A stretch of 62,981 bases of DNA, the filler included, from Reticulomyxa filosa (taxonomy: Eukaryota; Protista; Foraminifera), in the NCBI GenBank assembly GCA_000512085.1. It is 21 parts of 21 records of this genome, joined end to end, with 100 filler letters (N's around TTAATTAATTAA, not from the genome) between each part and the next. Parts side by side here need not be neighbours in the genome. Positions count along the whole stretch, not along the records: positions 30,431 to 34,399 come from ASPP01039483.1; 20 more parts are not named here. One strand, given 5' to 3'. The translations under genes were made by a program, and so were the position numbers. Below, piece after piece: positions 929 through 34,399 of this stretch. Position 1 is the stretch's first letter, and every line of letters starts with the position of its first letter. Below the pieces are notes generated by a model. It had not been told where the DNA came from. It was given only the letters and a program-made list of their open reading frames with translations, and made no database searches.

Positions 929-2553
929 ATATATTCTAAAAGAACGTTTGTGATTACAATTGATTAGCATATCAAAATAGACTGACATTGTTGAAACTTA
1001 GATTTATCTATTAACAAAATTTCATTTTCATTTTTAATATCAATGTCACTAAAAGTATTTTTAAAAAAGTGTTATAGATATGCTTACTTATAATACCATT
1101 GTTTTTTATTGAATTATTATTAAAAAAGTAAACTTAATACAATGCAAGTGTAATAAAAAAATGTAATTAGAATAAAATACAAATTCATTTTGGTTTTTAA
1201 TGTTCTGCAGAGTATATTTGGATATTATATTCGATATTTATTAAAATGACTTTTTTTGATCGATAATTCTCCACTTCAAAAGCCAGCGTACAAATACAGT
1301 ATTTGACAAACCGAAAAATCAAACTGGTATGTTTTCAAAAACGTTTTTATGCGTGAACTACAAGCAAAAAAAGAAACTTTTGCAAAATAGGTAAAATCTT
1401 CATTCAAATGTAATTTGATTTGCCCTACTAATAAATATACAAACAAGCATCACTACTCTACAATGCCACAGCAATTTGTCAACTCTGTCAAGTCCTTTTT
1501 AACAATGCGAACGCTTCTCAGTTTACCAAATTTTTTTGCAAGTTGTGGCTCAAATAAATTATTGTCTTTTTCATCTGTAATTATTAATATAATAAAAAAA
1601 TAATTAAAACTGATATTTTTCATTGAAAATTCATATAACAAATTAAGATATAATTGAACAGTTGTTCAAAAAGGGTCTAGTTCCATTTTTTTTTTTATTA
1701 TTTGTCATCAGTTACCGCTTTCTTCTTTTTTAAAGATTAATAAAGTAATTTTTTAATCCTGTAATTGCCGAAGAAATTGTCTGCATAAAACTAGTTGAAA
1801 AGTGTTCGGAACGAGTATTATTTTTTTTTAAGGTTATAAATGTTGAAAAATCTGTTTATTAGTCCAAAAGAAAGTCCAATTGAGTTCACCACAAAATACT
1901 TGAAGTGAATGTTGTGAATAGTTATTTGTTTGATTATTTATATTGTGTTGATTATTAGCCTTTTACACTTTGGCATTACAATTTAATGTCACAGTTAACG
2001 TATGCAGTTGCACTTTGTAAGCTTTTATGATGAAGACATATATATTGTTTCTTAGCAATGCAATGAAAGAAACGGGTCGCAATGGCATTTCCATGATTTC
2101 AAAAATGATTATCTGCTCAATGTATTTTTTGAGATATCCCATTTCCAACCTTACATAAAAAAAAAGTGGTAAAGTTCGCATTTTCTCTTCAATAGGAGAA
2201 ATGACTTCAACAACTCCAATTGAAAAGGGGCGTTCATGAAAAAATCTATTTGAACGGAAGGTAATCGGTTTTTGAATCTGGAAAGATTACTTGGAAAAAT
2301 TTGTATGAACAAATTTTGTACTTTATTGACGAACAAAACAAGTTAACGCATTGAGATCTTGTTTGTAGAAACATCAATAAAATTAAACCAATGGAATATG
2401 CAGAAAAAGTTAAGCAATAGAAGCAAAAAAGTGCCCTTAGCCCATCCCTTCATATCACAAAACGGGGATATTTGAAAAAAAAACAATACACCTTTTGTCA
2501 GGTTTGATTGGCACAGTTTTTGTTGTTTTCCCGTTTCCCCTTTTTCTTTACTC

Positions 2554-3161
2554 TTAAAATTCATCCGAAAAATCTTCCCCGGGTGCAAGAAGTCTAGGTT
2601 CATCATCTACAAGATCTTCCTCACAATTAACAAAATTGGACAAGTCTTTGTGATCTTTTACTGGATTTACAATTGGGGCTTGCAAAGTTCCTTGGAGGAA
2701 ATCTTTCCACGCAAAAGTTTGAAACCACGGATGCATTCGAATGTTATCTGCTCCTCCTTTGAGTATGCCAAGCCGTTTCACCGGACGACTTCGAAGTAGC
2801 TGTCGAATTAATTCCCTGGACTCTTGAGTGAAATAGCGTGGGAATTTGAGATGGCCACGAATGATTTTGCGATATGTTTGCATTGGATCTTCGTCAAAAA
2901 AGGGTGGAAATGAGGCAAGCATTTCATAGATCAGCACGCCTAACGTCCACCAGTCAACTGCGCGGCCATGCCCTTGTCCGATTACAATCTCCGGAGCTAA
3001 GTAATCTGGCGTGCCACAAAGAGTGAATGTTTTGTCGGTCACAATTTTGGCAAAGCCAAAGTCTGTGACTTTCAAATAGCCACGGTCATCCAACACTAAG
3101 TTTTCGGGTTTCAAATCTCTGTAGACTATGTCCTTACTGTGCATGTAAGCAAAAGCTTCGA
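2554..3161 (-). CDS. AGC kinase (cGMP/cAMP-dependent protein kinase), last exon, 5' partial
   Basis: EAFAYMHSKDIVYRDLKPEN, DFGFAK, TFTLCGTPDYLAPE, DWWTLG and an AGC C-tail ending DFSDEF. Acceptor AG ends at 3162. Confidence 0.93.
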
Positions 3162-3240
3162 CTTTTTACAACAAACAAAGTCAAAGACATACACAAAGAT
3201 ATATTATTATGATTTACTTTTGGAAAGAGAGAAGAGAATA

Positions 3241-3276
<36 letters not shown>

Positions 3277-3279
3277 GAT

Positions 3280-3379
3280 NNNNNNNNNNNNNNNNNNNNN
3301 NNNNNNNNNNNNNNNNNNNNNNNTTAATTAATTAANNNNNNNNNNNNNNNNNNNNNNNNNNNNNNNNNNNNNNNNNNNN
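3280..3379. other. Artificial contig spacer N44-TTAATTAATTAA-N44 (first of 20)
   Basis: Identical 100-nt linker with stops in all six frames. It recurs at 5615, 7199, 13268, 15496, 17884, 22144, 25541, 30331, 34400, 35500, 38518, 39793, 45213, 46967, 48140, 53778, 54996, 58867 and 61610. Confidence 0.99.
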
Positions 3380-3630
3380 TTCGAATATGGGACACAGCGT
3401 CAAGTAATCAACTTTGTGTATTGGAAGGGCATTCTGATTACATATTTGGAGTACAGTTTTCACATGATGGATCTAAAATTGTGTCATGCTCACTGGATAA
3501 AACTATTAGAATATGGGATGTATTATCAGGCCAACAAATTCAAATTTTAGAAGGACATTCATCAGATGTAAGTGCTGCGCAATTTTCATTAGATTGTTCT
3601 AAGATTGTGTCAACAAAACGATTTCATTGA
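3380..3630 (+). pseudogene. WD40-repeat fragment, truncated mid-repeat
   Basis: Two GH...WD repeats (LEGHSDYIFGVQFSHDGSKIVSCSLDKTIRIWD). The last repeat breaks off into a stop. Confidence 0.75.
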
Positions 3631-5458
3631 CCTTTTTTATTATCTTCCAGTGTCACTACACAATGTAAGTTTAAATTTTTATTTTGAAAAAAAAAATTAC
3701 ATAATGCTGTTTCCAACGAATTTTATACAGATTATATTGATAAGTGTTGAAGATTTAGAAACAAGTATATGAATGACACTTTTTTTTTACAAATTGACTA
3801 TCTTTTGAAGCCAATATACATTTTATCAGTATCTCTTCACTGACTAATGTTTGTATATTGACAATTGAAACGATTGTCAAAAAGTAATCTAGTATTTAAT
3901 TATTTCCGGATGGATGGCTTTGTCTCAAAAACGTTTCTAAAGATTAAATACTTTTATACTTTGTTTCAATTTTTTTTGAACGAGAAGCATTTATTTAATC
4001 TGCCATTAAAAGGGCTAGATTTATCTCTTTTTTATTAAATTTTTAAGAAACACTCCAATTTTTTTGGAGTAGAAAATTGGACAAGGAATCTATGTTTAAG
4101 GATATTCAAAAAATACTGTCATCGCTACGAACAGACCTATTATCTAAAATAAATTATTTTATACAATATTGCATATCAGGCAGCTGTCTATCCAATTTTC
4201 CAACTAATCAAAAACAGCATCAATTACATTTTTATGTAATATAAATCTATCCAAATTATAATCCAAAAATGTGAAATCAGAAAACATGGAAAACAGTAAA
4301 GTTCTTTATCAGTGGCAATTTTTTGAGATATGGTATTCATTGGTGATTTTTTTCAAAGAATAAACAAAAAATGGATTGATTTTCAAAATTCATCATATTA
4401 CTTTGGCACAACAAATAGATGGGACGAATGATGCACAAGAATTTTCAATGAGCACGTGTATAATTTTTAAAAATTTAGATATAAAAACTTGAATATTGTC
4501 AATTTTTGTTCGGTTTTCAAACAAAGTGCATTAAATCAAATTTTTTTTATTGAATAATAGCTTAAATAAATAAATGTGACGGCGGCACAGAGATGAGCAC
4601 ATACATGCCACATTTTTTACAAATAAATTATCTTATTTAATTTAAACAAAGCATTTAGTTCTTTTTTGTAAAAAAAAATTGTTCATCTTTTATTCAAAAG
4701 TATTTTGTTAAATTAATTTGGTTGTTAATGAAATGGAAGAAGTTTGAATACTAAGAAATAATACAATATACTTTTTTTCAAAAGGAATTGAACAAAAGCA
4801 AATTCATTAAGATATTTTTATTTTCTTTCTCCCAAATTACAAATAATTTCTCAAAATTAATTACTTGCAGGCGTACTGTTTAAAGCTCAAGGTGCCTCTT
4901 TTTAAAAAAAAGTCAGAAGTTTTAGCACAAAAAATTCCAATTGTTCTTCTGGTAACTGACAAATCAATTTGTATTTATTTCCTGAATAAAAATGGGAATG
5001 ACGGTCTACTGACTGGAAAAAAAAAAGTGCATACCTTTACTCCAATTTACACCACTTCACAAAAGTTTTTCTTTTAAATAACCAAAAATTTTTTAATGGC
5101 ATTACTTTTCTTTATCATACAAAAATTAAAAAAAAGCAAATGCAAGAAAAATAAATAAATAAAAAATTGAATCAGGCAGCACCTTCTGGCCTTCTTTTTG
5201 ATCTTTTCTCACTTTGCTTTTTTTCTCGTCAAACTTCCAGACAATACAAGTTGATTACAAAAATAAATCCAGTTTTCATATTTGGAAAAGAAAAACATTA
5301 CCTGTAGCATTTTTTTTTCTGGACTTTTTTCAAAGGGTAAAGTAATGAAAAAAAAGGCCCTTTCAAAGTTTGCATTCAATCAAGTCAAACAAATTCAAAC
5401 CATTTTCATTTTCTTTTTATCAGAAAATACTTTCATTTCTTTCTGGACAAAAAATAAG

Positions 5459-5614
5459 TTATCCCCAAATACGAATATGACCTTTGTATGAACCATAACA
5501 CAAGTTCAAACAATATTTACCATACTTTCCATTTCCGTTATCCATATCTTTCTTTTTTAGTAATATAAATTTTAAACATAATATTCCATCAATGTCATTA
5601 TCATCTGCTTTGAT
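5459..5614 (-). CDS. C-terminal end of a WD40-repeat protein, 5' partial
   Basis: Open frame from the contig end: IKADDNDIDGILCLKFILLKKK...LNLCYGSYKGHIRIWG*, a terminal WD-like blade. Missed by the ORF track. Confidence 0.7.
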   Translation of the reverse strand: MKADDNDIDGILCLKFILLKKKDMDNGNGKYGKYCLNLCYGSYKGHIRIWG

Positions 5615-5799
5615 NNNNNNNNNNNNNNNNNNNNNNNNNNNNNNNNNNNNNNNNNNNNTTAATTAATTAANNNNNNNNNNNNNNNNNNNNNNNNNNNNNN
5701 NNNNNNNNNNNNNNTTAATAAAAACCAAATAATATTTAAAAGGTACACGATTTGTAGATATTTTTTTAAAAATTAAGTCTGAATGTTATTTTTTCATGA

Positions 5800-5855
5800 A
5801 GAAAATCAATCATCTCTATAAGGTGCCATTTTAGGTGTCAACTTTACTTTGCATT
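5800..5855 (+). repeat. Dispersed repeat, copy 2
   Basis: Exact match to 1-56. Confidence 0.9.
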
Positions 5856-6286
5856 ATGCTGTACTTTTTAAAAATATATATATTTGTAGTTTTTGAAAAA
5901 GTCTTATTTTTTATTTTAGTTTAATTCATCAGTATGTCAAATAAAAACTGAAAACACAATATTCAACTTTTTAAATTTTACTTCTTTTTTATGAAAATTG
6001 AATTTTTGATTTTTGAAATGTCAAATTTTTTACTTTTTATTTTTATAATTTGTTTCTTCTGCTTCAATTACTGGTGATTCTTTTTTCATTGATCAATCAT
6101 TGCTTGTTACAATTTAGTGTCGATATTACTAATCAAAAATATTACAATTTTAATGTTATTGCTTTTTCTATATTGTGTTGTAACCCAATTAACGTAAAAA
6201 AGCAAAGCAATGCTGGTTTAAAACGAACCTTTGAACAGGTGCGAGCGTTTTTTTGATAAATGCTGTTGTAAATAAACGGGGCTAGC

Positions 6287-7009
6287 ATGTCTATTGATCC
6301 TCTTGTTTGCTCAAATGGTTGTACTTTGTTTACTTCTTCAAATCACTTCAATAACTCGTGCAGCAGTATTTATGCATTTGTTCCCAACGGTGACAGCAAC
6401 GGCAGCTCAGGAATGAACTCGCATATTTGCGCAGAAGTTCTCATCAACGCTATAGTGGACAATCAGTCTTCCATTTTTCCCAATGGACTCAGTTTTTTTT
6501 TTTTTTTTTTTTTTTTGAAAAGGAAAGTGTTTTGCAAAAGGAACAGTCAAATGAAAAAAATTTTAAAAAAATAATGATTGACAATAGTGAAACCAGCAAA
6601 GTTGTGGGAAGCAATAGTATTGTCATTTTGCATACCAATGGGATTAGTAATGCTTTTGATTTGTGTATACGTGAATTGGGGAAGCAAAGGAAGACGTCGT
6701 CAATTTTGGAAAGAAGGTGTATTGGGCCGAGTGTTCAATATCAAAAAAAGGGTCCCCGAGCCGAATAGCGGAACAGTAGCAGTTGGACCGGCAGTATCCC
6801 CACAAACGAAATATTCGACATTGCGAATAGTCACACGTCAAAATGATGGAGATGACAATGAAAAAATACTGTTCATCCTTCGTCATCCTCATCCCCTTGC
6901 TCTTCTTCTTCTTCTTCTACTCAATCCCGATCCCAGTCTCGATCCTACTCGCGGTCTGTGCATCAACGCAAGCACGAAGCGACACAATCCAAGACAACAC
7001 CGCACGTAG
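6287..7009 (+). CDS. Hypothetical single-pass membrane protein (exons 6287-6491, 6588-7009)
   Basis: Intron 6492-6587 joins two ORFs in frame. Cys/Asn/Ser-rich N-terminus, TM segment AIVLSFCIPMGLVMLLICVYVNW, then basic KGRRR. Confidence 0.5.
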
Positions 7010-7135
7010 CAAAGCAAAAGCACAAAGATAAAGAACAGAAAACACCAAAAAAAAGTCACTCAAAAAAAGGCGAACGAAATCAAGCCACAAAACTGGTTGT
7101 CCACAAATCAGGAGTCATTGTCAATACTATCAATG

Positions 7136-7166
<31 letters not shown>

Positions 7167-7440
7167 CCTCCTTTCTATTATTCCCCCTCCTCCTCCTCNN
7201 NNNNNNNNNNNNNNNNNNNNNNNNNNNNNNNNNNNNNNNNNNTTAATTAATTAANNNNNNNNNNNNNNNNNNNNNNNNNNNNNNNNNNNNNNNNNNNNTT
7301 TTTTTTTTTTTTTTTTAATACAGTTGAAAAAAAAAAATACAATTCAATTTATTAAGGACGTTCAAATCTTACCCCTTTATCTCTCTATCTCTCTCTTCTC
7401 TTCCCTCCCTCCTCCTTTCTTCTTGTGCAATACATGCTGA

Positions 7441-7784
7441 CCTTCTTCGTCATATGTAATAGCCATATTTCGACGGTCCCTACTACTTATAAGACGTATA
7501 CACACTCGTAGCGCATCCAAACGGTCAAATTTATGTCTTGGCTTGCGGTGATTGTATTTGATGTCGTGAAGTGGTCGTTTCTCCAAAGTATCTAACAAAT
7601 GGATTATTGGTACCACTTGCGAATATGCATCTGTGATCTCTTCAATGAACATGTTTTGACTCGCCAGGTGTGCGTTTATCCAACCTGTGAAGGCCTTCTT
7701 TTGTTGATCCACCCATGTCTCCTTCGTGGTTGTGTGTGATAATCCTCTATCTTTTTCTCCAATGTATAATTTGCATTGAGCCAT
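7441..7784 (-). CDS. Calponin-homology (CH1) actin-binding protein, filamin/alpha-actinin type, first exon
   Basis: WVDQQKKAFTGWINAHL...IHLLDTLE matches the CH1 consensus QxxTFTxWxNxxL. Confidence 0.8.
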
Positions 7785-8235
7785 TCGCTGTTCAAGAGTT
7801 TTGAAAATAATTTAAACAACTTACAAAAAATTCAACGCATGCAATCTCAGTATACAAATACACGCACTTGATTACAAAAAACATGTATCTAAAATTAGAT
7901 CTTATTGCATTTGACATTTTTTTTACAGAAAAATAAAGATCATTTGAAACAACAGTCTGAAATTTTGAAAAAAAGTATTAGTATTTCTTATGATTTTTAC
8001 AATTTTTGTCAAGAAATAAGACTAATGAACAAGTGCAAAAAGTATTGACGGTAGAACAAAAATGGATGAACGAAAGCTGGAACCAGTTGGAAAGCAAGTG
8101 GACTACAAAAAAATAGCGACTTGTATTGAAATATACTAAAACTCAGTAAATATTATTTCATTAGTAGCAATGTCACAAAAAAAAAAAATGATGATATTTC
8201 TTTGAATTGAAAGAACAAAAAAGTTGTATTGATAG

Positions 8236-30430: not shown

Positions 30431-33400
30431 ACAGATGGAAAGAGTACGTCCAAGCATTGGCACGAATAGAAGAAGTGGCAAGAACAGAAAAAGACATTTC
30501 GATTGCAGAGGCATCTCAATACTACGATGCGTGCGCTGAGTGTGTGGGTAAAGATGTTTCATCATACGCGAAAATTGGTTTTTTTGATGTATTGATTCGT
30601 TGTGAGAACGAACTGAAAATATTGGCAAGGGATTCAGATTTTACGAATAACACAGAGTTTGAGAGGGTTGTTCATGCATTGAACGAAAGTAATCACCAAG
30701 GTCTTCAGCAGTTGATTCATTCCTTGAAAGTTGTGAATCCTATAATGCAACAAAAATTGTGGAAGCGTCCATTGGAAAATATGACAAACTTGGTCAAGGC
30801 TATATTATCATTATGTCCGGACGATGAAAACTTTGTGCAAATGCTAAAAGACTGTTGTGATGCAAATTTGAAAAATATTTCTTCCTTAGTCAAGGAGGAA
30901 GATAAAGTCCGTACAGAAAAAAGTTTGGAGCAATTGAAGGAGGCAGTGACGTATGGTCGATGGCAATTTGGAAGTTGTGAAGATATATTGCAAGGAAAGA
31001 AAAACCATGAATTAGTGCTGGAAATTACTACTATCGTTTGGCATTATGACGAAATTGGAAAAAACATTGATCGTGTGTTGCTTGGAGTAAACGAAAAAGA
31101 GTTGAAAGGAATTGAGGCTGTGATCAAGCAATTCGAAGAATGCAAAGAAATAAGCGCATCTCAAGTTGAGTTTTGGAAGAAAGGAGGAAGAATTTATAGT
31201 CACAATAATCGTGACAGCAGTGGCAATGAGGTATTATATTTGTCTGTGAATTCACAAATGAGTAAATTGACAACGTGCAAAGATCTTTGGCAACAACGAC
31301 TAAGTCAATGGAAAGAACATGCTTTTCAATTAAGAGAAAAGTTTCCTGCTCTCAATTATTTCCGTTTCAATGAAATACACTCTTTAATTCATCAAATTGA
31401 TACTTTGCTATCACCCAAGTGCCTTGACCGTTCTCTTCAAGCAGCCAAATCTATCAAACCGTTTCTTCAGAAAATCGACTGCCAAGTCACTGATGAAGAT
31501 ATTGACAAGATATTACAAGATTGGAGAGATTTCAATTGTGATATATTGAAAAATTATGATTTATATAATATTAGCGATCGAGACTTCAAAAAGTGCAGAG
31601 ATACCATTGCAAGGTTCGGATTGATCCTTCGGCCATTGTGGGCTTGTTTTCCATCTGATCGTGTCGAGAGGCCCTGCCCGATCTTGTTAAATGTCGGAAA
31701 ACCTAATTTAATCCTTTGTCCACATAAATCACTATTGTTGGAAGTTCTTGGTTTATTTGAATCGCATGAATATATCCCACGAGCGGAACATATTTTGATT
31801 TGCAACGAGCATACAGCCGAAGAGGATGTCACTTGTTTGATATTTCGGGCCATTGGCAGCGACAAACGAATGCAGATAGAAACTACGAACATGGAGATGG
31901 ATCATGGTTTTGTGAAACCATTATATTGCTTGGTGTGTCCAGAAAATTTAGCTCCTGAAACATTGAATCAAGTCTGTAAAAGTGTACACGGTACATTATT
32001 GAATGATATTCAATCCGAAAAATTAAAGCGCTGCTTTTATATGTTTGCTGTCATGTCCTGCGAACGTGACAATCTTTTATGTAAACTCTTGGAGCCATTT
32101 TGTATTTCACTCTCAAATATATCACTCCGAACTCTTCCAAATAAAATGTTATCTCGATTTTATCGTAACAATTGGACCAATCCACAATCTCATTCCATTG
32201 CCACAGAGCCACCATGGATACAGTTGTATACATCGAAACAGGTTGGAATGGGCAAGAGTACACTTATTCAAAGAGATATCGAAAAGATTCGAAAAAACAC
32301 GAAAATAGCACTAAAATGGTCAAAGAAATTTATGTTGCGTTTAATGGCAAAGATATCGATTGGACACAAATAATGGATAATCTTTGGAGTTATCATCCTT
32401 GCCCCAAGGATTCATTGATTATTTATCATTTAAATATCTCCTCTTGTGTTTCAGTGCAAATCAACGACTTTTTATTTGAATTATTATTTCTACGACACAT
32501 TGACTCTAATTCTCAAATATCGCAATGCTTTCATGTCAATCCCAATATGATCTTTTTAATTGAAATTCCTTCCACTTTGGATAATCTCAGCCCCAATGAA
32601 ATGTTTTTCAATTTATTCTCTCATACTATTCAATTTCCAATTGTTGAAGTGTCAGGTCTAAATAATCCATTTGAATTTGGAATGGATGCACAATATACTG
32701 TCAAATGGATGCAACAATATTTCCAAGGAAATTTAGAGTTCTCTTACATTTTTTTTGCTTTTTTTTAACAAAAACTACTTATATCTCTCCTGGTGTGCAT
32801 TTTGAAAAAGAAGGGCTGACTTTGATCCAAATACATCCGACCTTCGCATAGAGGACATGCAACAGTTTATGAAGAAGAACTTTTATGGAATAGCCAGCTC
32901 AATTCCAGTGCATCAACGTTCCTTTTTCAAATATTTATATCAACAGTTTGTACCTCTATTACAACCTCCATTGAAAGAAAAGACAGTTCAATTGAGATAT
33001 GATATTACAAAATCTGTGATCGATATGGCCAAAATCTTATGTTGTCGCCAGTATGATCATATCGAACTGAATGAAGACGAGAAAAGCGAAAAAATCGAAA
33101 GTACTGGTGAAGAGGAATTTTATTTGTGTAAAAAATGGCGTAACTCCAGAAAAGGCTGGTTCTTGGTTAATCAAAATGGAGGTTAAAGTATATGTGTATA
33201 CCTTAGTTTATTTCAAGTAAATAAAATCGTTTGTTAATATGTTCTCATAGAGGATCTTTCCATATTGATTAATGACTCCCAAAATATAAGCAAACAAGAA
33301 CTAGGCATTTTGAAAAGGTTAACATCTTATTTATTTGATCAACAACAAGATTCGAAACAAATGGAAGCAGCCTTTCTAGTTTAAAGTCTTTGTCTATTTT

Positions 33401-34399
33401 TTTTTTGTTTCTTTATATCTCAAAGCACTAAAATTTGAAACAAATAAAATAAATTTTAAAGGTTAGAGAATCGGAGGTAGAGAAGACAGAATTGTTATTA
33501 CGAACAGATAAAGAAAAAAAATTGCGGGTATTACTGCACATTTTGGGGATTCCAAGTCGAGGAGTAATGAAAAATTGTGAAAAAAAAACAGAACAAAATA
33601 AAGATGGTTCGGAAAACACAGAGGCAGAAAATCTTCACGACCAAATTGTGAAAAAGTTATGTGACGATGAAAAATGGTTAAATTATGTGCTAACACTGGA
33701 CAACATTCTGAAAATGGTTGCCATTTTTATGAAAATTCGAACTAACACTCCTGTCATTTTAATGGGCGAAACGGGATGTGGAAAGTCATGTCTGATAAAA
33801 TTTTTAAGCTATGCCGCCAATGTGAAGTTAATTGCAGTGGATGTCCATGGAGGATTTGGGAGGGATGATCTTCGCCAAGTGATGAAAGATTGTAACACGC
33901 AAATGTCTAGAGATAATGAACCGGAAATGTGGGTATTTTTAGATGAGGTAAACACATCTCCAGATATCGGATGGTTCAAAGAGCTGATTTGCGATCGCAG
34001 ATTGGATGGAATGAAAATTCATGACCAAATAAAGATTATTGCGGCATGTAATCCTTATCGACCACGAAAAATACAAAATACTGACAATATAAATGTAAAT
34101 GATCCATTGAGCAAATGGGTGTATCGTGTATTTCCATTGTGTGAGACCATGAAAGAATATGTTTGGTTCTTTGGTCAGTTATCTGCATTGGATGAAAAGC
34201 AATATATTCGAGGCATGGTTAAAGAATTGAAAGAAAAATTTGACAAAAAAAGTAATGTATTCAAAAAAATTGAAAATTCGGAATTAACGATTACAGAAAG
34301 TATTGTAGAATCACAACAATTCTTACGTAAACACTTGGCGAATGAATCCATTGTATCATTGCGTGATGTTAGCAGATGTCTCAAGTTTTTCCATTGGTT
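30431..34399 (+). CDS. RNF213 (mysterin)-like dynein-type AAA+ ATPase, internal fragment (exons 30431-32737 with frameshift at 32292, 32814-33181, 33251-33378, 33462-34399)
   Basis: SKQVGMGKS, YHLNIS...FLFELLFL, YVLTLDNILKM, PVILMGETGCGKS, VHGG, FLDEVNT, IIAACNPYR, VYRVFPL, VWFFGQL, VSLRDVSR follow the RNF213 AAA core in order. Three introns restore the frame. Confidence 0.88.

Follow-up and report, generated by a model that had tools for sequence, protein, structure and literature searches.

A fragment of a giant RNF213/mysterin-family AAA+ gene from the foraminiferan Reticulomyxa filosa, more likely encoding a non-catalytic member of a lineage-specific expansion

We analysed a stretch of DNA of 62,981 nucleotides (called the window here, with all coordinates counted along it) from the genome of Reticulomyxa filosa, a foraminiferan within the Rhizaria, and focus on one piece of it, positions 30431-34399, which is base for base the entire 3,969-bp contig ASPP01039483.1 of assembly GCA_000512085.1. 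This piece is very probably a fragment of a giant gene of the RNF213/mysterin family of AAA+ proteins, belonging to a lineage-specific expansion, and its product is more likely non-catalytic. A first-pass annotation, made from the sequence, had already proposed an RNF213-like protein from a likely rhizarian, and both the family and the taxon hold. The coding model has five segments on the + strand of 621, 146, 123, 42 and 312 codons, giving 1,244-1,246 codons in all, in keeping with the more than 1200 spliced codons (about 1,245 in our model) reported earlier. Three GT..AG introns of 73, 69 and 83 nt separate the last four segments, and the junctions joining exons C, D and E are identical in the GenBank protein RFI_36441 (P0001). 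The gene is open at the left contig edge and is cut at the right edge inside its third AAA module, AAA3, so that any E3 end would lie outside the contig, as first proposed. The GC content of the piece is 30-39%. The features are as follows.

30433-32296, + strand: segment A, open to the left contig edge
30433-31644, + strand: first ~404 codons of segment A, all-helical in an AlphaFold (AF2) model and in the position of the RNF213 linker, adjoining the AAA1 match on its upstream side
31645-32232, + strand: AAA1-like alpha/beta module without Walker A, placed by a match to the start of mouse RNF213 AAA1
31696-31719, + strand: GKPNLILC at the expected P-loop site of AAA1, aligned to mouse GQPNLILC
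32245-32262, + strand: AAA2 P-loop GMGKST, by direct reading, with MGKS as the consensus of the paralogues
32297 (about), + strand: 1-nt deletion and frameshift in an A-run just past the AAA2 P-loop helix, from comparison with paralogue L002
32298-32737, + strand: segment B, the remainder of the AAA2 large domain, one frame off segment A, placed by a mouse RNF213 match
32553-32570, + strand: degenerate Walker B FLIEIP of AAA2, with LIEIP aligned to mouse LVEIP
32738-32810, + strand: intron 1, 73 nt, GT..AG, with a frame break at this position in paralogues L003, L004 and L005 too
32811-33181, + strand: exon C, between the AAA2 and AAA3 matches, as in GenBank RFI_36441
33182-33250, + strand: intron 2, 69 nt, GT..AG, junction in agreement with P0001
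33251-33378, + strand: exon D, 42 codons, as in P0001
33379-33461, + strand: intron 3, 83 nt, GT..AG, junction in agreement with P0001
33462-34399, + strand: exon E, which encodes AAA3 and its complete ATPase site, placed by the RNF213 match, the AF2 model and Foldseek
33765-33788, + strand: Walker A GETGCGKS of AAA3, by direct reading
33936-33956, + strand: Walker B FLDEVNT of AAA3, by direct reading
34041-34061, + strand: sensor-I Asn in AACNPYR of AAA3, by direct reading
34356-34376, + strand: SLRDVSR of AAA3, by direct reading

Over the whole piece, the minus strand has open reading frames (ORFs) of at most 112 amino acids, none of them supported, and we found neither tRNA genes nor notable tandem repeats.

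All searches and models were run segment by segment and exon by exon. Exon E matches human and mouse RNF213 over its residues 74-312 with expectation values (E) of 3e-37 to 2e-34, and the top match (E 2.8e-37, 132 bits) extends over 239 residues, at 2432-2690 of a tagged human construct. GETGCGKS, FLDEVNT, AACNPYR and SLRDVSR each align to the same motif of human RNF213 AAA3, and the module can be identified as AAA3 because the Lys and Glu aligned here are those published for its Walker A and Walker B (human K2426/E2488, mouse K2387/E2449; PMC12075652). The first-pass annotation had taken these four motifs as a series running through the AAA core; all four are indeed present, but they lie within a single module and are not spread over the core. 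It had also assigned SLRDVSR to the arginine-finger region. SLRDV lies about 105 residues past sensor I, in the helical lid (helices 274-291 and 300-311 of the exon E model), and judging from this position it is more probably sensor II than an arginine finger.

The fold leads to the same family. The AF2 model of exon E, for which 47 relatives were used, has a predicted local distance difference test (pLDDT) score of 89.7 and a predicted template modelling (pTM) score of 0.85. In Foldseek its top eight matches are all RNF213, with E of 3e-16 to 6e-14, template modelling (TM) scores of 0.63-0.66 and 32-38% identity; dynein follows (E 7e-7, TM ~0.53, 13-17% identity), then MoxR/NorQ, and midasin is outside the top 50 structural matches. 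In sequence, midasin reaches 57 bits (E 1.6e-14) over 50 residues around the P-loop only, with no similarity across the AAA modules past it, and dynein reaches 23 bits. Pfam finds generic AAA families only in exon E, including the dynein-related AAA_5, AAA_7 and AAA_8, and finds nothing in segments A-D. Exon E therefore encodes a homologue of the AAA3 module of RNF213 in which Walker A, Walker B and sensor I are all complete, and the protein is RNF213-like by sequence and by fold. The comparison with RNF213, midasin and dynein that had been suggested as a check on the earlier assignment has RNF213 as best match, and no grouping with midasin or dynein was found.

The part upstream of AAA3 can be read against mouse RNF213, in which the linker spans residues 1291-1774 and the AAA core 1775-3405; AAA1 lacks both motifs, and AAA2 has a real nucleotide site, where ATP acts as a 'molecular glue', together with a non-catalytic Walker B (Ahel 2020, PMC7311170). 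Residues 405-477 of segment A match mouse RNF213 1773-1847 (7oik numbering) with E 8e-5, and the P-loop position of this AAA1 has no GK[ST], as in the RNF213 module. About 180 residues beyond the AAA1 anchor stands GMGKST, of which MGKS is the consensus in a 13-row alignment of paralogues. Residues 40-96 of segment B match mouse RNF213 2012-2066 with E 0.012-0.014, which is weak alone but collinear. Here too the organization is that of RNF213: a nucleotide site is present and the Walker B, with IEIP (VEIP in mouse) where DE would be expected, is non-catalytic. The three anchors for AAA1, AAA2 and AAA3 are collinear with RNF213 and, as far as motifs can tell, the piece reproduces the RNF213-specific pattern in which AAA1 is dead, AAA2 only binds and AAA3 is competent.

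Structural comparison of the upstream part is less sharp. The AF2 model of segment A has a pLDDT of 54, with residues 1-404 all-helical at low confidence and a beta-alpha-beta pattern over residues 426-542. RNF213 takes ranks 1-5 when the model is searched with Foldseek, but only with E 0.01-0.03 and TM 0.15, and a VIA-align comparison of residues 426-606 with AAA+ large domains, covering chains up to 3,000 residues, gives weak scores (Z 3.5-4.9). The first ~400 residues would, from their place just ahead of AAA1, correspond to the linker. The roughly 500 upstream residues in which no domain had been recognized are thus better described as a putative helical linker, AAA1 and the start of AAA2 with a second P-loop, GMGKST. 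All 13 sequence relatives of segment A come from R. filosa, and the paralogues extend at least 1,500 residues further upstream. Exon C has no similarity that we could find outside R. filosa and no Pfam or PDB match.

A feature missing from the first-pass annotation interrupts this reading frame. No intron lies between segments A and B: a single base is deleted at ~32297, where the piece reads CGAAAAA-ACACG and paralogue L002 (ASPP01039482.1, 92% identical) reads CGAAAAATACACG. The frameshift is either a base-calling error in an intact gene or a very recent inactivation. We consider the latter unlikely, but it deserves to be taken seriously: a real deletion would truncate the protein past the AAA2 P-loop and leave this locus dead in an otherwise functional family. 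The deletion is unique to this contig, since four paralogues (L002, L003, L004 and L005) keep an unbroken frame across 32297; it is not a plain change of homopolymer length, with AAAAATA in L002 against AAAAAA here; and in a large, quickly duplicating family some gene death is expected. Against this, the lesion sits in an A-run, where base-calling errors classically occur, the AAA3 motifs downstream of it are all intact, and the rest of the gene bears marks of selection. The ratio of nonsynonymous to synonymous substitution (dN/dS) against L002 is 0.29, with a synonymous divergence (dS) of 0.16 over 1,089 codons and zero in-frame stops in the five segments (Nei-Gojobori), so that the gene is under constraint; for exon C the ratio is 0.19. 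Apart from 32297, all exonic indels relative to L002 are multiples of three, including those of 12 and 3 nt in exon D, and the reading frame has therefore been maintained. The remaining indels that are not multiples of three all fall in the three predicted introns (intron 1 holds both 1-nt indels of its region, intron 2 one of 4 nt and intron 3 one of 10 nt), which supports the splice model. With frame and motifs intact in this way, any inactivation would be very recent.

The database record of this region is affected by the same lesion. GenBank protein RFI_36440 (P0104) is mis-modelled: it places an intron over window positions 32103-32199 (1673-1769 of the piece), which bridges the frameshift and deletes the AAA2 P-loop, and its first 28 residues are read in a different frame from segment A. 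In addition, contigs ASPP01039483.1 and ASPP01039482.1, which have adjacent accessions, start at the same homologous base, which suggests either an assembly break at a shared repeat boundary or collapsed and uncollapsed copies.

What follows AAA3 can be seen in longer relatives. Along their whole length L003 (14.7 kb) and L004 (23 kb from a contig of 30 kb) are collinear with the piece and with each other, and L003 runs on into RNF213 AAA4-AAA5, as far as the start of AAA5 (human 2915-3161, E 4e-23). The AAA4 site is complete in L004 and L006, with Walker A GKPGTSKT or GNPGTSKT and Walker B DEIGLAE. Sequence similarity to AAA6 could not be traced in the paralogues, and the ORFs of L003 downstream of AAA5 have no Pfam or PDB matches. 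At ~6460-6810 of L003 the reading frame is interrupted between Walker A and Walker B of AAA4, a region that L004 and L006 read without a break. L003 and L004 show several interruptions of this kind, for which short introns, base-calling errors or the decay of some copies may be responsible. Upstream of the paralogue in L004 (ASPP01046428.1), at 1072-7891, lie a fatty-acid desaturase gene and a gene for a tetratricopeptide (TPR)-repeat protein.

About 1,250 residues past AAA4, L003 and L004 both carry a small Cys/His motif. A word search with this finger region returned one fragment, and an exhaustive profile search returned 22 proteins, nine of the ten looked up being from R. filosa. Among these, P0123, P0126 and P0129 match with E of 1e-35 to 3e-24 and themselves pass the Pfam family ZnF_RZ-type (PF20173) at 35-44 bits, with P0123 and P0129 at 35-38 and P0126 at 44, for a cut-off of 27. 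The fingers of L003 and L004 can thus be taken as homologous to the RZ finger, since intermediate R. filosa paralogues connect them. P0123 lies directly downstream of the AAA3/AAA4 core on L006 (ASPP01001449.1), a locus collinear with L003 to its end, and a metagenomic relative (1,602- to 3,808-aa protein) matches ZnF_RZ-type at 63-64 bits. With AAA core and RZ finger at one locus, full-length members are therefore AAA-ring and RZ-finger proteins of RNF213 size. P0139 (L007 1696-13122, ENA ERZ27254846) is a complete, intronless metagenomic ORF of 3,808 amino acids that combines an AAA3/AAA4 core with a strong RZ finger (63 bits). It is collinear with the copies in R. filosa, and in its AAA3 it is loosely grouped with a protein from Symbiodinium.

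A RING was not found in L003, L004, L006 or P0139, either as a Pfam match or as a pattern. The search for a RING or RZ domain past the contig end, which had been proposed at the outset, has therefore yielded the RZ-type finger and no RING. The RING is dispensable for RNF213 activity (PMC7311170; PMC12075652), and for this reason its absence is a variant feature and no ground for exclusion from the RNF213 family.

The fingers are of two kinds. Mouse RNF213 binds zinc through C4451, H4455, C4471 and C4474, and has C4462 as the nucleophile that accepts ubiquitin and H4483 as general base (bioRxiv 10.1101/2021.05.10.443411; PMC12075652). We compared with these the finger regions at L006 6357-6719, L003 11367-12101 and L004 21409-22482. 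In the first kind, comprising P0123 of L006, P0126 and P0129, the motif is C-x3-H-x6-C-x8-C-x4-C, and the loop Cys stands at H+7, as C4462 does relative to H4455 in mouse; a His at nine residues past the last Cys, the place of mouse H4483, is found in P0123 and P0129, with Tyr there in P0126. In the second kind, comprising L003, L004, P0118 and P0119, the motif is C-x3-H-x13/16-C-x4-C, with no loop Cys and no His at +9, so that L003 and L004 retain the CHCC zinc ligands but have neither catalytic residue. P0131, P0133 and P0135 form a further, third group, likewise without loop Cys. L008, L009 and L010 are C-terminal parts only and provide no link from AAA3 to the finger.

Which of these ends belongs to the gene in the piece is best addressed through its AAA3. 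In a second AAA3 tree it falls inside an 11-row clade with a support of 99, and within this clade L003 (P0002) branches off at the deepest split, with L004 and the piece together in the group on its other side. Because L003 and L004, which bracket it, are both Cys-less, the gene most likely ends in a finger without nucleophile, as judged by phylogenetic bracketing from two loci. It could instead encode a fully catalytic RNF213-type E3 whose C-terminus carries the nucleophilic Cys and the His, as in L006, P0123 and P0129: R. filosa does have copies in which a single locus joins an AAA core to a ZnF_RZ-type finger, the gene's own C-terminus lies beyond the contig, and just two bracketing loci are known. 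We regard this as improbable, given that the gene is placed between two Cys-less loci with a support of 99 and that the Cys-containing L006 is placed in another R. filosa clade; exon E is 72% identical to L004 as against 49% to L006.

The family is large in this organism. A word search with exon E finds 30 R. filosa proteins on 30 different contigs; 23 of these fragments contain the AAA3 Walker B, and most retain GETGCGK[ST], AACNP and SLRDV. As only three pairs are at least 90% identical, we count at least ~20 distinct AAA3 loci by sequence, among annotated fragments of 171-546 amino acids, which sets a lower bound for the genome-wide count of paralogues that the first-pass annotation had proposed. 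In a maximum-likelihood tree of 87 AAA3 modules, all 25 R. filosa rows and two further sequences form one clade with full support (100) in the Shimodaira-Hasegawa-like approximate likelihood ratio test (SH-aLRT); animal RNF213 forms a separate clade (support 98), and the R. filosa clade is also apart from groups with Heterosigma and Symbiodinium proteins. One of the two additional members is a marine metatranscriptome sequence. P0019 (Tara metatranscriptome ERR1719483) and P0024 (Logan/ENA) stand inside or next to the R. filosa clade, so that the family extends beyond R. filosa. P0019 and P0060, the latter from the transcriptome of the cercozoan Euglypha rotunda, come from transcript-derived data, and the family is thus transcribed in at least some relatives.

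The expansion is lineage-specific; it reflects neither contamination nor genes lately acquired from animals. Since RNF213 is best known from animals and the R. filosa assembly is highly fragmented, one might suspect a contaminant or a recent horizontal transfer from an RNF213-bearing animal, but we find either very improbable: at least 25 copies lie on separate R. filosa contigs and form their own clade well away from animals, identity to animal RNF213 is only ~34-40%, the short GT-AG introns are at positions common to the paralogues, and relatives occur in the transcriptome of the rhizarian Euglypha rotunda and in a marine metatranscriptome. Virtually no credence attaches to a midasin/Rea1, dynein or MoxR-type identity, for which the generic Pfam families and the midasin match at the P-loop could be cited, and which is effectively refuted by sequence (50 residues for midasin against 239 for RNF213, and the low dynein score), by fold (RNF213 nine orders of magnitude ahead of dynein, and midasin outside the top 50) and by collinearity of the AAA1 and AAA2 anchors with RNF213, in addition to the RZ fingers in the paralogues.

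The gene stands in GenBank as a hypothetical protein. Some R. filosa paralogues are labelled 'ring finger protein' or 'RZ-type domain-containing protein' in the databases, so that family membership is already implicit in automatic annotation. Our search of the literature on RNF213 with Reticulomyxa, protists and evolution or phylogeny turned up no paper in which relatives of RNF213 are described from protists or from Reticulomyxa.

Taken together, the piece is best explained as part of a giant RNF213-family gene, containing what would be the last ~400 residues of the linker, an AAA1 without P-loop, a binding-only AAA2 and most of AAA3. From the collinear paralogues, the protein would continue beyond the contig with an active AAA4, ~1,900 further residues and a C-terminal RZ-type finger. 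If it works as mouse and human RNF213 do, ATP would be held permanently in AAA2 as structural glue, and ATP binding at AAA3 and AAA4 would set the conformation of the ring and thereby switch the C-terminal module. In copies of the L006 type this module is probably an RNF213-type transthiolating E3, which would take ubiquitin from an E2. Members of the subfamily around the piece would be ATP-gated but form no thioester of their own, and may serve as scaffolds, sensors or decoys, or work in partnership with the catalytic copies. Because the catalytic Cys and His are gone in the bracketing subfamily, the product of this gene is more likely a scaffold, sensor or partner than a ligase, and it is doubtful, from the residues present, that this subfamily coats anything with ubiquitin. 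The earlier suggestion of a different effector is thus borne out in part: the RZ finger comes without RING, and the bracketing paralogues are without the catalytic pair.

Several points weigh against this interpretation, and concern different parts of it. First of all, the frameshift at 32297 may be real, in which case this copy is a young pseudogene. Second, the contig stops inside AAA3, and the Cys-less state is read from two bracketing paralogues only. Third, the fingers of L003 and L004 match Pfam ZnF_RZ-type at only E 0.19, and a finger-region profile built from two sequences failed to find RNF213 in the PDB. Upstream, the linker assignment derives from position and a low-confidence model (pLDDT 54; Foldseek E 0.01, TM 0.15), and the AAA2 anchor is weak by itself (E 0.012). 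The trees are quick ones with no outgroup. Finally, no result here bears on immunity.

RNF213 is usually treated as a vertebrate or animal protein, known as the Moyamoya susceptibility factor and as an immune E3 that ubiquitylates lipopolysaccharide (LPS). Here a free-living foraminiferan has no fewer than 20 RNF213-like genes whose ring follows the same logic, with AAA1 dead, AAA2 as glue and both AAA3 and AAA4 active, and which have an RZ finger. The absent RING is consistent with the biochemistry, in which the RZ finger and not the RING is the catalytic core. A subfamily without the catalytic dyad, whose ATPase sites are under purifying selection, amounts to a set of natural separation-of-function variants, and the dyad-less copies could reveal a role of the AAA ring apart from ubiquitin transfer. 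That the family helps to defend the cell against bacteria or viruses is plausible, given what animals show and how far the family has expanded; we would call it possible but somewhat unlikely. The expansion hints at an arms-race role, yet does not count as evidence for one. A bolder proposal, that a RING-less AAA-RZ machine has been split into catalytic and non-catalytic copies, with this subfamily serving as sensors, decoys or partners in cell-autonomous defence of a protist, is in our judgement a long shot. If true, it would resemble the sensor/helper split known from nucleotide-binding leucine-rich repeat receptors (NLRs) and would push the origin of RNF213-type immunity back before animals.

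It is instructive to set the gene beside the known systems. ZNFX1, the other protein with a finger of this type, shares the RZ-type finger (PF20173), which is carried by paralogues of the gene in the piece, but ZNFX1 is a helicase without a six-AAA ring, and nothing in the piece resembles it. Midasin/Rea1 is, like RNF213, a giant protein with a six-AAA ring from the same AAA clade, and shares the 50-residue P-loop match; it differs in lacking similarity past the P-loop region and in being absent from the top 50 structures, and it has a MIDAS domain and a role in ribosome biogenesis. The cytoplasmic and axonemal dynein heavy chains are the second-best structural match to the AAA3 model, and the AAA2/3/4 organization of RNF213 has been described as analogous to dynein (Ahel 2020, PMC7311170). 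Identity to dynein is, however, 13-17%, and AAA1 is the main motor site in dynein, whereas AAA1 has no P-loop here.

RNF213 itself (6TAX, 7OIK, 8S24 and 9JW1) differs from the R. filosa proteins in several respects. No RING is found in L003, L004, L006 or the 3,808-aa P0139; the last pair of zinc ligands is C-x4-C in R. filosa and C-x2-C in RNF213; the subfamily surrounding the gene in the piece is without the catalytic Cys and His; R. filosa has many paralogues (at least ~20) where one or two are usual; and sequence similarity is undetectable outside AAA1-AAA5 and the finger. There are likenesses as well. AAA3 is 32-38% identical, with the same Walker A and B, sensor I and SLRDV; the states of the ring sites correspond, with AAA1 dead, AAA2 binding only and both AAA3 and AAA4 competent (AAA4 being known from the paralogues); the parts are collinear, with ~1,880-1,890 residues from AAA3 to the RZ finger in L006 and P0139 and ~2,060 in mouse; and one R. 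filosa subfamily has the RZ Cys at H+7 and the His at nine residues past the last Cys. The RNF213 family is a known one, and the RING-less architecture and the nucleophile-less subfamily are variants of it that are worth following up.

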